From: Zygophlyctis sp. KS116
Lineage: Eukaryota > Fungi > Chytridiomycota
Length of the DNA stretch: 32,000 nt
Assembly: GCA_054661495.1 (NCBI GenBank)
Contig: BAAFSQ010000025.1
Coordinates: 30,001 to 62,000 of the forward strand
Direction: 5' to 3'
Shown: in pieces, positions 776 through 6,021 of the stretch
Numbering within the stretch: the stretch's first letter is position 1
Layout of the letters: each line of letters starts with the position of its first letter
Notes under the pieces: model-generated
The model's input: only the letters and a program-made list of their open reading frames with translations
What the model was told of the DNA's origin: nothing
The model's database searches: none
Program-made: the position numbers and the translations under genes

Positions 776-1852
776 TCTTTTTATTTCTTTTCAATCGTTT
801 AAGTTGTTTTTTGAACGGGTCTGCTCCCAACGCCGACGATTGAGATTCAGCAAATGATCCAACAGCGTCATTTAAATTTGACGCTCTTCTTTTAGATACA
901 CCAGAAATATTATGTAATCCAGATGATTTTAATTCATGTCGTGTCTGATTTCTCTTTTTTAAAACTCCACTTTTGCCAAATGCTAAATCATCTTGTGATC
1001 CTATAAATCGATTTAAATCTGAAACTCTTTTAAAGTCTTTTTCAAGATTCTAAATTTAATTCTTGTAAAAAATCTTACTTGAAATTCATTATGAAATCTC
1101 ATTAAACCTCCAGATCTTGATAATTTCTTTGATAGTTTCTTATCTTCTCTAGTCATATTTAATCGCATAAAGTTTTCTTCTTCAAATGCTTCTCTTTCAT
1201 TCCATGTTTGATCTTCTTTTGTAGAATTAGAATCTCTATTACCATATCCAGTACCAGCAGCTGAAAATTCTTCTGGACGATCATCAAATTGATCTTTAAG
1301 ATCTGTTAATATCCTTGATTTTAGAGTTTTTTTCTTATCAAATTTAGATCTAGTTTCTAAATATGGCATTGGAGCTACTCTAGGAGGTCTGTAAACATTT
1401 TCAGTCTCTTGTACTGATTGAGACTGTAAAGATGAAGGATTTGGTTTAAATAATAACGGATCTACTTCTGCGTCAACTTCTTCAACTTCTTGAATACTTT
1501 GTAAATCTGCATTAAGAGCTGCAGATTTCATTAATTTATCTATTTGATATTTGATCTTGACTTCCATTGGTTTAATCTTTTCTAAAACTAGACGATGTTC
1601 AATCAAACTGTTAATTAATTCTTCATCAATCTCTGAACCATTAATCTTTAGTAGAATTAGATATGCAAGATGTTGCAAGTATCCTAGTAATGAATGCAAC
1701 TTGACTTGAATCAATGAAACTCCCTGATCAGTTGGTAAATCTTTTAGTTCGCTCAATAGGGGAGTTATGCGATCAGAAAGATCTAGAGTTGTAGAGTCTA
1801 TAATAGATAATATTTCAGAAAGAGAGTCCATATCAATGTCCAGATCTGTCAT
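765..1852 (-). CDS. LCP5: Neuroguidin/Lcp5, SSU processome (Sas10/Utp3/C1D domain)
   Basis: Motifs GVSL..VK..SLL.Y, LEKIKPME.KIKYQIDKL, FKPNP, YRPPRVAP, FEEENFMRL. A 29-nt intron at 1050..1078 opens a last exon ending KRLKRNKKNVF* (stop 765..767). Confidence 0.9.
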
Positions 1853-1973
1853 TTTGTAGTTGCAGAAACTGAAAATTTAAAAAAAGAATTCCTTCTTATA
1901 AGATTTTATTCGCTCTTATAAGCCTTTAAGTTTTCTGTCAAATCAGATCAAGACTCAAACTAATATCTGTAAA

Positions 1974-3519
1974 ATGAGATCTAGACTTGGGACTTTTATT
2001 ACAACTCTGGATAATGGCATTAGAGTAGCTAGTACTTGCGATCCTTGTCATTTTATGAGTGTCGGAGTTTATGTTGCTGCTGGAAGCAGATTTGAAAATA
2101 ATCAAACTACAGGATGCACTCATTTGATGGATCGCCTTGCATTCAAAGTAATTTTAAACTATTAATGCTAGAGTACTAAAAGTATTTCTGCAGAAAAATT
2201 AGTAGAAACAATGGAACATTTGGGAGGAAATGTTATGTCTCAGGGATCAAAGGAATATTTTATGTATCAGGCTGTAATTTCTTATTTCTTAATAATAGTC
2301 TATTTTTCCAAAAGATTTATCAAGAACAATTTCTACTTTTTCTTCAATGATCAATGAACCTCTTTTTGATTCAAAAGAAATTAAAACTACGCAGGAATCA
2401 ATGCTTTGGGAGATTGAAAATAGGAAATTTAATACTGATGAAACACTTCCAGAGATTTTAAATTCAATAGCTTATGGAAAAGTGGGAAATGATGATGTGA
2501 ATACATTGGGAAGGCCATTGTATCCTTCAAAAGTTTCATTACTTGATCTAAATGGAGATATTTTAAGACAATTTCATTCTAATTGGTTTACTCCAAATAG
2601 AATGGTTGTTGCGGGTGTAGGAGTTGATCATAATGAATTCGTGGATCTAGTTTATAATTCATTTAAGTCTTGTAATTCTCCCTCAAAGGAAATTCTTGAT
2701 TTGCAAAAAGATGTTCCTTTAAAATACACTGGTGGAACTCTAATTACAGATACATCTAGTCATCCTCCACATCCTAATCCAGAAAATATGCTATTGACAC
2801 ATTTACATATAGGTTTTGAAGCATTATCTGCGACTGATCCTGATATTTATGCTCTAGCGACTTATGTATCACTAATGGGCGGAGGAGGTTCTTTTTCAGC
2901 CGGTGGTCCAGGAAAGGGGATGTATACAAGAGTTTACAGGACTGTATTGAATAAATATGGATGGGTAGAATCATGTAATGCAGTTCATCATCCGTATTCT
3001 GACTCATCACTGTTTGTTATAAAGATTGCTGTTCCTCCTTCTCCTGGTTCTCATCAACATGTAGTTGATGTAGTTTGTGATCAGCTAGTTGGAATGGTAG
3101 AACGCATTGATCCTGAAGAATTATCAAGAGCAAAGAATCAATTAAAATCATCCTTATTGATGTCTCTAGAATCTAGATTAACTGAAGCTGAAGATATCGG
3201 AAGACAGATTTTAACATTTAACAAGAGATTAGATGTAGTTGAAACTTGCAAAAGAATCGACAGTTTAACGACTGAAGATTTGAAGCGAGTTGCCCGTCGT
3301 GTTATTCTAGGATCAAATGAAGAATCACCTCTTAATTTCAATGATCCTAGCAGTTCTCCATGGAAAAGAACAGGAAATGGAGAGGCGTCAGTTCTAGTTT
3401 GGGGAAATTTAGGACGGGGGGATTATCTTTATAAAATCAATGATCGAATGACTCAATGGGGAATCAAGACTCTCCCACCTCAATCTTGGATAGATAAACT
3501 TAAAAGATTAGTATTTTAA
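1974..3519 (+). CDS. MAS2: Mitochondrial-processing peptidase alpha subunit
   Basis: TTLDNGIRVAS, non-catalytic HLMDRLAFKST, glycine loop GGGGSFSAGGPGKGMY. Introns 2148..2171 (24 nt) and 2274..2298 (25 nt). Confidence 0.96.
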
Positions 3520-3647
3520 TATATTGCTCTCTTTCGACCCACTAAAAAATCATTCTTTTTGTGGGAGATACAGAGAGACATTTATATATGAACTTCTAGC
3601 ATAGAATTAATCATTGACAGATGTGATCATTGCCAAAAGAAATTCAG
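3518..3647 (-). ncRNA. Box H/ACA snoRNA with two 18S rRNA pseudouridylation pockets
   Basis: Minus strand: hairpin 1 (UGAAUUUCU/AGAAGUUCA, pocket UUGGC(A)...AUGCU), H box AUAUAA (3587-3582), hairpin 2 (CUCUCU/AGAGAG, CCCAC/GUGGG, pocket GUAUCU...UCG), terminal AUA-variant box. The pockets match conserved 18S AGCAUUUGCCAA and (C/U)GAUCAGAUAC. Confidence 0.8.
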
Positions 3648-4522
3648 TTAATCGAGGGTCGTGTTCGAGGTGAAAAAAAAATAATCCAAATCTAAACCTA
3701 CGACTCAAGATTTACGGATTGTATTAAAGGCCAACTTATCTAGCTCCATTCCGAAAAATCCAATCTTTGACTCGGAATGATTGCATTGTCCCATTGATTT
3801 GGTATTTTCTGCGGTCGGAAATCTATTTAGAATTTCTGATTTCACGACATCATCCAACTCCATCCTATAATTTCACTAAAATCTATCATACCAACTCTGA
3901 TCACTTTTAATAAAATCCAAATAGTTTTTTTGTGATTGATTTTCACCATTACACGTTTTTAAATGATCAAAATAATCAATATGAGTAAAGTAAGATTTAA
4001 TAGCAGTCATCCATTCACTTAATACAATACTCTTATTTTGGCAGAAATCTGCGATATCGAAAGTAGCTTGAAAAACAGATTTTGGAAAATCCGGACAAAT
4101 CTATTGTGAATACTACTGTTATTACTAATAGCATCCAGTTATGCAATTCATCTAGGCTAAAACATTCTTCAATAGACTTTTTCTCAGATTTAATGATCTT
4201 ACATTTGTAAACAGATTCTCATAATGTGAAATCAATGCTGTCCGATTACGCTTGTTTTTACAAATATAATCATATTCTCGAAGTAATACATGAGTATTTA
4301 AAGAAACGGCATCAAAACTAGATTTAGCAGTTTATGTCGTACTATTCGCTTAGAAACAGTAAAGGTTTATCATCCTTTTTGTTAAGTAATTAAATTAATA
4401 CGTATTGGGCAGACATTAATCTTGATAATGAATCATTTAGATAAAATTCAATATTATGTTTTCCTGGTTTTAATGCGATGGAAAATACTTAGATACAATT
4501 CATCCGCATCGCCGTCCATCAT
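3648..4522 (-). CDS. CSTPP1: CSTPP1/C11orf49 (UPF0705) homologue, centriolar-satellite tubulin polyglutamylase regulator; 8 exons; absent from the ORF track
   Basis: Introns 4464..4488, 4375..4401, 4318..4342, 4177..4202, 4101..4125, 3865..3891 and 3692..3715 (24-27 nt) give MMDGDADELYLRKHNIEFYLNDSLSRL...FLSEYFDAVSLNTHVLLREYDYI...NR...MLLICPDFP. This matches recalled human YL.QRH..TY.EDA...FFTEYFNSV..GTHILFREF...NR...LLCPDFP. Confidence 0.88.
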
Positions 4523-4693
4523 ACGTAAGTAGAGCGCGTTAAAAGTTGGACGGTACTTGGGTACTTGATCGTATTACCGTTTGAGAATCGGTAGATGAGA
4601 AGGATAATTTAAAATCTGAGATCTAGTAATAGTCGCATGCAATACTATCAAACCATGAGTATACTTGGATCGCAATGTTAGGCATGGGTTTTT

Positions 4694-5947
4694 ATGGCGT
4701 CTAAATTTGGTCAAATCCCTGCTATTGAAAATTCAAATGAGCGATCTGCTGCTATATCTAGCATGGTTGCTCAAACGATTGGAAATGAAGAATACAAGGA
4801 AGTGATTGCTTGGGCTGTGCAGGAAGCACATGGATTGACATTTTCAAGATTGGTTGTGAATGAATTTCTTGATCAGGTTAATAAGCTTACAGAGGATGTT
4901 AAATATGATATGCTGCTTTTTTCTCTTAATATATGTAGTCAGAGAACTACAGCATTTGAAGAACAGGTAGCTGGTTTATACTTATCTTAGATTTCTGTCA
5001 TTAGGGAGCAATTGGCTGATATCGCACAGAATAGAGGGGAATATACTCTCTCTGCAAATTATCTCATAGGAATTCCTCTTGACTCTGGTCATCGTAGTAT
5101 ATCAAACAATACTAAATTATCCTATTATGTTCGAATATCTAGGTTATTCTTGGAAGATGAGGATTTTGTTGGTGCTGAATCCTATATTAATAGAGCGGGA
5201 TTCTTGTTGGATAATTCTGTTGAAAAAGTATTACAATTACAGTTTAAGGCTGCACAAGCTCGAATTTTAGATATGAAGAGACAGTTCTTGCCAGCAGCTA
5301 CTAAATACTATGAGTTATCTTTGGATCAAGAAATGCATGAATCTGAAAGAAATTCTGCTTTGAAATCTGCAATCACTTGCTGTATATTGGCTGGTGCAGG
5401 GTATTTAAGAATTTGATAATATTATAGGCCTCTTCGCTCTAGAATGTTAAATACTCTTTATAAAGACGAACGGCTACATAGCAAAAATATAGATACTTCA
5501 TACAATGAGTTTAGAGAAAAAGGCCTGTATTTTATTCTCGAGCAAATGTATTATGGAGGAATCTTAAAAAAAGATCAAGTTGCAGAGTTTCAAGAGAGTC
5601 TATTATCACATCAATTGGCCAAGTTGGCTGATGGATCTACGGTCTTTGATAGGGCTATCATGGAACATAATTTACTTTCAGTATCCAAGCTATTTTCAAA
5701 TATTACATTTCAGTTATTGGGTTATTTACTTTCCGTTTCTCCATCACAAGCTGAACAGATTGCAGCAAGTATGATTGAAGAAGGGAGAATGTCTGGAACA
5801 TTAGATCAAGTTGAATCTTTAATACATTTTAGCCAGGAAAATCCCATGGAGGAATGGAACAAGTCAATCACGCAAATGTACAGTCAGTTAGATGAAATAG
5901 TATCTAAAGTAGCCAAAAAACACCCAGAATGGATAGGAAGTTTATGA
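4694..5947 (+). CDS. CSN4: COP9 signalosome subunit 4 (PCI domain)
   Basis: FEEQ-ISVIREQLA, GIPLDSGHR, AESYINRA, LAGAGP.RSRML.TLYKDER, DRAIMEHNLLS. Introns 4967..4990 and 5401..5427. Confidence 0.96.
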
Positions 5948-6021
5948 CTGTAGAAAATTCAATAGAGTTGATAAGGATATACAATATTCCGTGTATTAAA
6001 CATTCAGTTATAGACAGATTC

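Follow-up and report, generated by a model that had tools for sequence, protein, structure and literature searches.

A probable dual-guide box H/ACA snoRNA gene conserved downstream of MAS2 in a lineage of early-diverging fungi

Introduction

Box H/ACA small nucleolar RNAs (snoRNAs) keep a fixed distance of roughly 14-16 nt between the target position in a guide pocket and the H or ACA box; the literature consensus of the H box is AgAnnA, and AUA is an accepted variant of the ACA box. In budding yeast, snR31 guides the pseudouridine (Psi) at position 999 of the 18S ribosomal RNA (rRNA), and its equivalents, which are Nc ACA5 of Neurospora crassa (where the position is 996), snoR5 of Arabidopsis and human ACA8, guide through the hairpin next to the ACA box. 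A second site lies close by: human 18S position 1004, which corresponds to yeast U947, has SNORA57 as its guide RNA, whose 5′ pocket takes a non-canonical form with three nucleotides. Yeast U947 is unmodified, and Psi999 is the sole pseudouridine of that region in yeast. Here we describe an element that very probably is a genuine, conserved, single-copy gene for a box H/ACA snoRNA with guides for both regions, and we compare it with these systems. It occupies about 129 nt of the minus strand (3519-3647) of a 32,000-nt stretch from the chytrid fungus Zygophlyctis sp. KS116 (GenBank assembly GCA_054661495.1, contig BAAFSQ010000025.1, positions 30,001 to 62,000), referred to throughout as the window and numbered from its first letter, and it lies between the convergent genes MAS2 and a CSTPP1-like gene. 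The class of RNA is well known, and this member of it would join two functions, its 3′ pocket being of the snR31/ACA8 type and its 5′ pocket directed at the target region of SNORA57.

Results

The minus strand from 3647 to 3518 folds into a hairpin, a hinge, a second hairpin and a tail, with a minimum free energy of −34.2 kcal/mol against a mean of −21.6 kcal/mol for shuffled sequences (z −3.81), and none of 200 shuffles folds as stably. An earlier note, made by reading the letters of this DNA, had placed two minus-strand hairpins here, together with an ANANNA box, an AUA-type terminal box and two pairs of pocket strands, and all of these parts were recovered where it had put them. The coordinates of the parts given below are on the minus strand and were verified by script, and the ends of the mature RNA are predicted ones.

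Reading the RNA from its 5′ end, the lower stem of the first hairpin pairs 3638-3646 with 3589-3597, an arrangement given by the fold and by covariation, in which five of nine pairs are changed on both sides among relatives. Above this stem opens the first pocket, whose 5′ guide strand, UUUGGCAA (3630-3637), has a core, UUGGCA, that is invariant in all eight sequences compared and complements UGCCAA of the 18S rRNA, and whose 3′ guide strand, UAUGCU (3598-3603), has an invariant UGC that complements 18S (A)GCA(U). The upper stem and loop between them (3604-3629) are weak in this genome, at −1.8 kcal/mol. The hinge carries the H box AUAUAA (3582-3587), which fits ANANNA and stands 14-16 nt past the first pocket. 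The second hairpin is built in the same manner, its lower stem pairing 3572-3577 with 3527-3532 (again by fold and covariation), and its pocket formed by GUAUCU (3566-3571), invariant in eight of eight sequences and complementary to 18S AGAUAC, and by UCGAA (3533-3537), the invariant UCG of which complements 18S CGA (UGA in yeast, with a G-U pair). The upper stem and loop of this hairpin (3538-3565) have an invariant CCC/GGG base, and the remainder varies between relatives yet keeps the stem fold. After 13 nt of 3′ pocket strand and lower stem comes the terminal box AUA (3522-3524), which occupies the same alignment columns as the ACA of more distant relatives, and the predicted 3′ end lies 3 nt further on, at 3519. 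Across all eight sequences, 13-14 nt of 3′ strand precede the AUA or ACA and 14-16 nt precede the H box. The genome also encodes a protein with the DKCLD domain of Cbf5/dyskerin.

Two other kinds of H/ACA RNA were considered and rejected. A small Cajal body-specific RNA (scaRNA) would be expected to carry the CAB box (UGAG), which is absent from both terminal loops. The H/ACA domain of a telomerase RNA came into question through a CCCTAA-like motif upstream, and was set aside on the grounds that the RNA is only about 129 nt long, both of its pockets are conserved rRNA guides, and the DNA upstream is coding.

Strong evidence comes from related genomes. The window is part of contig 25 of a 12.7-Mb assembly of 1175 contigs with about 34% G+C, and the best named matches of its MAS2 protein belong to Chytridiomycota at about 50% identity, closer matches coming from metagenome assemblies. 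Using MAS2, we fetched seven syntenic relatives (L001-L007), with amino-acid identities of 98, 85, 80, 80, 64, 59 and 53%, the 98% being that of L001. All seven have Sas10/Utp3 (LCP5) upstream of MAS2, six of them Shg1 too, and CSN4 follows downstream in L001, L003, L004, L005 and L006, where the contig extends far enough. The two-hairpin element is present in every one, just downstream of MAS2 and on the opposite strand. The copies of the window and its seven relatives, eight in all, gave a covariance model (model R1) that scores 85-145 bits on the relatives, and in the window's genome it finds a single copy, at 141.5 bits, the next match having an E-value of 0.7.

The pattern of conservation within the element follows its proposed function closely. 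The invariant alignment columns are essentially the rRNA-complementary nucleotides, UUGGCA and UGC in the first pocket and GUAUCU and UCG in the second, and the remaining invariant columns are the CCC/GGG base of the second upper stem and single box positions. Mean pairwise identity is 0.94-1.0 in the 5′ guide strands, 0.66-0.82 in the 3′ guide strands (with the UGC and UCG cores invariant), 0.54-0.88 in the arms of the stems, and 0.38 in the upper stems and loops. The boxes vary between the sequences. The terminal box is a canonical ACA in L004-L007 and AUA in the window, L001, L002 and L003, in identical columns and 13-14 nt from the upper stem, and the H box of six relatives is of the AGAUNA type (AGAUAA, AGAUUA, AGAUCA, AGAAUA), while that of L005, AGAUUG, lacks the final A of ANANNA. 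In L004 a run of N, a scaffold gap at about 1547-1556, starts 6 nt past the ACA box, so that its 3′ flank is not comparable.

The earlier note had named covariation in related genomes as a check, and the check came out in its favour. Over 22 well-aligned pairs in the eight sequences, 87.5% of the cells are standard pairs and nine pairs are altered on both sides, values that none of 500 shuffles reach; one pair of a lower stem is seen as AU, UA, GC and CG among the homologues. As a control, sliding the partners by 1-3 columns lowers pairing to 35-59%. The strand is supported as well, since the sense strand is more stable than the antisense by 5-8 kcal/mol in seven of eight homologues, and G-U pairs also favour the minus strand.

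Both pockets find their complements in a well-studied part of the small-subunit (SSU) rRNA. The second pocket pairs with CGA-[U C]-AGAUAC through 3+6 Watson-Crick pairs (up to 11 bp in L005), and the first with AGCA-UUU-GCCAA(G) through 4+7 or 5+6 pairs depending on register, 11 bp in all, so that it brackets the UUU run that contains the equivalent of yeast 947 and human 1004. More than 115 metagenomic contigs of ribosomal DNA hold both target sequences. On one of them (L019), confirmed as eukaryotic SSU rRNA by the Rfam model RF01960, these two sites are the only matches at the threshold used, and the third U of the UUU run stands 52 nt before the U addressed by the second pocket. The spacing equals that from yeast 947 to 999, and it shows that the earlier note had numbered both sites rightly: it had assigned the second pocket to yeast Psi999, the snR31 site, which complementarity and the literature also support, and the first to yeast U945-947 near human Psi1004, a run that is human 1002-1004, the SNORA57 site, in agreement with published numbering.

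Taken together, these features suggest the following course of events. An RNA of about 129 nt, transcribed from the minus strand from about 3647 to 3519, would assemble with Cbf5/dyskerin, Nop10, Nhp2 and Gar1, and the resulting ribonucleoprotein (RNP) would present two guide pockets to the pre-18S rRNA, where the expected target sequences in this organism are CGAUCAGAUAC and AGCAUUUGCCAA. In the 3′ pocket, GUAUCU/UCG paired with CGA-UC-AGAUAC would place the U equivalent to yeast Psi999 at the top of the pocket, 13-14 nt before the AUA box, so that the 3′ hairpin would serve the function of snR31, Nc ACA5, snoR5 and ACA8. In the 5′ pocket, UUGGCA/UGC[U] paired with AGCA-UUU-GCCAA would lead to the isomerisation of one U of the run at yeast 945-947 or human 1002-1004. 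From the pattern of the DNA we infer that the RNA accumulates and directs both modifications; its exact termini, the choice of U within the run and the mode of transcription are likewise predictions.

The immediate surroundings of the element bear on its expression. MAS2, which encodes mitochondrial processing peptidase alpha, ends on the plus strand with the stop codon TAA (3517-3519), and this abuts the 3′ end of the snoRNA on the other strand, a contact that is shared by L001, L002 and L003, and in L004-L007 the element stands 35-140 nt from the MAS2 stop. From this geometry, any MAS2 3′ untranslated region (UTR) longer than 0 nt must be antisense to the snoRNA. On the other side lies the CSTPP1-like gene, whose identity comes from the gene between MAS2 and CSN4 in Batrachochytrium dendrobatidis, a weak match to the Pfam domain CSTPP1_N (PF27900); the pieces of the upstream open reading frame (ORF) in the window have no Pfam match. 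Within the CSTPP1-like region, at 3812-3893 on the minus strand, there is also a weak C/D-box-like match to snoZ278 (16 bits, E 1.9), probably noise. Further on, the region of the divergent promoters of the CSTPP1-like gene and CSN4 (4523-4693) differs between the window and L001 by 15.8%, the flanking genes differing by 1.2-1.4% and the snoRNA by 0.8%.

According to the earlier note the snoRNA exactly fills the gap between the two stop codons. This holds at the 3′ end, where 3519 is the last base of the MAS2 stop, but the proposed start 1-2 nt after the CSTPP1 stop fares less well. The most likely stop of the CSTPP1-like gene is the TGA at 3705-3707 on the minus strand, 57 nt away: the homologous ORFs of L003, L005 and L006, and apparently that of L002, stop within a few codons of the aligned position. 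The nearer TAA (3648-3650) can be reached only by splicing out 3692-3715 (GTAAAT...TTTAG, 24 nt), which resembles the local introns. This intron is absent from the relatives, the 15 residues it would add form a T-rich tail of low complexity, and L001, although 98% identical, has an in-frame TGA inside the supposed last exon, so that we regard the intron as doubtful. Because the last clear frame ends at TGA 3705-3707 and the 24-nt intron lacks conservation, the gap between the stops is more likely 185 nt, with the RNA in the 129 nt proximal to MAS2 and a spacer of 57 nt upstream of it.

The ordinary introns of these genes are extremely short. Homology-guided exon mapping indicates introns of 24 nt (2148-2171) and 25 nt (2274-2298) in MAS2 on the plus strand, running from GTAATT or GTATGA to TAG, and the CSTPP1-like gene has an apparent intron of 27 nt (3865-3891, minus strand), which follows from the reading frame alone. 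Sizes of 24-27 nt are unusual for a fungus. The remark in the earlier note that introns here are too small to host a snoRNA is right for these typical introns. An intron-hosted snoRNA was rejected on separate grounds, as conserved flanking splice sites were not found and the TACTAAT...AG downstream is MAS2 coding sequence read antisense and is not conserved.

The spacer itself (3648-3704, minus strand) may be promoter, leader or upstream 3′ UTR. It contains a run of nine T (3673-3681), a degenerate CCCTAA-like motif, GACCCTCG (3653-3660), and TCGATTAA (3648-3655) directly before the first stem. The distance between the upstream stop codon and hairpin 1 comes to 20 nt in L002 and about 270 nt in L004, and for the window, L003, L005 and L006 it lies at about 46-62 nt. 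The window and L005-L007 have a T run upstream, and behind it comes TCGATTAA in the window, L001, L006 and L007; the latter motif is kept in lineages as distant as 53-59% MAS2 identity. A motif resembling a telomere repeat, RCCCTAA, lies 4-55 nt upstream of the element in L002, L004 (several copies, in a degenerate array) and L007; L003 has it with a single mismatch, the window shows a degenerate form, and L005 and L006 lack it. Within the window RCCCTAA is rare, with one occurrence found against 4.8 expected. Three tandem copies of TTAGGG were not found in the assembly, a result that is uninformative on the organism's telomere repeat.

Discussion

Several observations count against the conclusion that this is a working dual-guide snoRNA gene. 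No Rfam family matches at its gathering score, and the models of snR31, SNORA8 and SNORA57 give no match even at E ≤ 10. In a search with 1500-6000 of the window, the one listed metatranscriptome run (word share 0.06) returned a single 42-nt piece of 86% identity, far from the locus, which speaks neither for nor against expression. The complementarity of the second pocket comprises only 9 bp (6+3), and since chance matches of 9 bp allowing G-U arise a few times per 10-15 kb, the case for this pocket rests on its conservation and on the known family that guides the same site. The geometry of the first pocket leaves the target U ambiguous within the UUU run, and the weak upper stem of hairpin 1 suggests that this pocket may work poorly in the present genome. 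The central region of the organism's own 18S rRNA is absent from the assembly in a BLAST search with metagenomic SSU sequence, so the targets are assumed from their universal conservation. What BLAST recovers are two scraps at contig ends, 125 nt on contig 28 (32-156, L123), which extends to 167 nt, and 77 nt on contig 180 (1-77, L124); patterns of conserved 18S sequence had no match in the assembly.

The same holds for the narrow distribution of the gene. With filters off, our covariance model has no match in the 455-nt gap between MAS2 and CSTPP1 of B. dendrobatidis, where the gene order Sas10/Utp3, MAS2, CSTPP1 and CSN4 (L129, 2138-9622) is common to that species and the window's clade and MAS2 is about 48% identical. 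Nor does it find one beside MAS2 in Spizellomyces or Phlyctochytrium, or in three further relatives with broken synteny; all of these genomes, that of B. dendrobatidis included, may hold a copy elsewhere. On the loci compared, the snoRNA gene at this MAS2-adjacent position is a feature of the window's clade.

One could suppose that the RNA is a real H/ACA snoRNA of which only the 3′ hairpin, the Psi999-type half, is active here, the 5′ hairpin being a structural half or in decay. At hairpin 1 the upper stem has just −1.8 kcal/mol in the window, as in L001, and −1.6 in L003, whereas the other four relatives range from −5.8 to −13.1 kcal/mol (−13.1 in L002, −10.4 in L005, −7.8 in L004); its best local stem shifts register in a way that moves the UGC guide off the stem; four lineages have A and the other four C as the guide nucleotide adjoining the upper stem; and yeast has no pseudouridine at 945-947. 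Yet UUGGCA and UGC are invariant in all eight lineages while the stems around them change, which is hard to explain without selection on a guide, the weak stem could be stabilised by bound proteins, and vertebrates do modify the site. We consider a single active hairpin unlikely on this balance. Much less probable still, to the point that we give it very little weight, is that the element is no snoRNA at all and instead a conserved structured part of overlapping 3′ UTRs, acting as a terminator or as a regulatory or antisense element for MAS2 or the CSTPP1-like gene. It does sit where both 3′ UTRs must overlap, but such a role explains neither the invariant rRNA-complementary nucleotides nor the correctly spaced H and ACA boxes, nor G-U pairs that are valid on the minus strand only, and in L004-L007 the element stands apart from the MAS2 stop by the distances given above. 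The dual-guide snoRNA is the reading we keep as the most probable.

How such a snoRNA would be expressed is a more evenly contested matter. The earlier note had offered either dicistronic processing from an mRNA 3′ UTR or a promoter within the upstream coding sequence, a model that stays plausible. With just short of an even chance, in our estimate, the snoRNA lacks a promoter and is released by processing from RNA of the CSTPP1-like gene, be it the 3′ UTR of the mRNA or a read-through product, as half of a dicistronic mRNA-snoRNA unit. In five lineages the spacer is short (20 nt in L002, about 46-62 nt in the other four), and a genuine 24-nt intron would bring it down to 1-2 nt in the window; the linkage to the CSTPP1-like gene holds wherever the upstream flank can be read (L001-L006); and an H/ACA snoRNA of N. 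crassa is annotated in a 3′ UTR. The spacer of about 270 nt in L004 fits this poorly, and the conserved upstream motifs, namely the T run, TCGATTAA and the CCCTAA-like sequence, could be elements of a promoter. That is the substance of the other possibility, which strikes us as rather improbable though a real contender: an independent RNA polymerase II unit whose very compact promoter would occupy the spacer together with the final stretch of the upstream coding sequence, perhaps with an (A/G)CCCTAA site. Tbf1 sites mark snoRNA promoters in yeast, and telo-boxes mark those of plants, so by analogy the RCCCTAA motif might be a promoter element of the Tbf1 or telo-box type. It is found with at most one mismatch 4-55 nt upstream in L002, L003, L004 and L007 and is rare in the window, and the T run followed by TCGATTAA recurs in the lineages listed above, but the window itself has only a degenerate form of the motif (GACCCTCG), L005 and L006 have none, and sites 4-15 nt from the mature 5′ end are too near for the usual upstream activator site. 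Because the spacer measures only 20-62 nt in five lineages and the linkage is conserved, we lean slightly towards transcription that depends on the upstream CSTPP1-like unit, whether by 3′-UTR or by read-through processing.

A larger conjecture can be built on this, which we hold to be somewhat improbable as a whole. The CSTPP1-like mRNA and the snoRNA would form a conserved dicistron, the snoRNA maturing out of the 3′ UTR or of read-through RNA, in a lineage with ordinary introns of no more than 24-27 nt; the same DNA would be antisense to the MAS2 3′ UTR so that three transcripts share about 130 bp, and the pseudouridine of the human 1004 region would be ancestral to fungi and animals and lost in budding yeast.

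The gene is of an ordinary kind, and what is known of H/ACA RNPs is unchanged by it. Its value lies elsewhere. An early-diverging, poorly annotated lineage of fungi, known mostly from metagenomes, gains a well-supported H/ACA guide RNA, and two 18S pseudouridines are predicted, one of them at a site that is unmodified in budding yeast and modified in vertebrates, which bears on the age of that modification. The tight placement offers a handy case for the study of snoRNA expression in a genome with introns of 24-27 nt: in most lineages the RNA follows one gene by 20-62 nt, and in the window, L001, L002 and L003 it abuts the stop of a convergent one. Within one sub-clade the terminal box has changed from ACA to AUA, a natural experiment on a small scale in how much variation the box tolerates.

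Among known systems, the group of snR31, Nc ACA5, snoR5 and ACA8 (SNORA8) comes closest in function. As in those RNAs, the hairpin proximal to the ACA box would guide the U equivalent to yeast 999, at the standard spacing to the terminal box. Unlike them, the window RNA ends in an AUA box, its length of about 129 nt falls well below the 187 nt of Nc ACA5, and it has a second conserved guide in the 5′ hairpin, for which neither snR31 nor Nc ACA5 has a reported counterpart. It also lacks detectable similarity, in sequence or to a covariance model, to the Rfam families of this group. Because the family covariance models give no match, we file the RNA as a putative functional equivalent of the snR31/SNORA8/snoR5 group instead of an orthologue.

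With SNORA57 (U99) the likeness is one of target region only. The 5′ pocket of SNORA57 guides 18S Psi1004, and the first pocket of the window RNA pairs on either side of the same UUU run, where three nucleotides may lie in the pocket, the arrangement described for SNORA57. There is no similarity to its covariance model, canonical geometry in the window RNA favours the first or second U and not the third, and the 3′ pocket of SNORA57 targets 18S 1045/1046, whereas that of the window RNA fits the site equivalent to 999/1056. At permissive thresholds, the only suggestive Rfam match is to the first hairpin of TtnuHACA18 (RF02325) from Tetrahymena, at 28-30 bits and E 0.007-0.016, and the same search with the L005 copy returned noise only. 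The pocket of that hairpin, GUAUCU ... GGGUCG, is the same as the second pocket of the window RNA; against a gathering threshold of 100 bits the score falls far short, the matching hairpins occupy different halves of the two RNAs (5′ in TtnuHACA18, 3′ here), and the rest is unaligned.

In its genomic setting the locus most resembles Nc ACA10 of N. crassa, which is annotated in a 3′ UTR and, like the window RNA, lies directly downstream of a protein ORF on the same strand. The two differ in that co-transcription is putative in the window, and in that the snoRNA described here is, in addition, flanked without a gap by the stop codon of a convergent gene.

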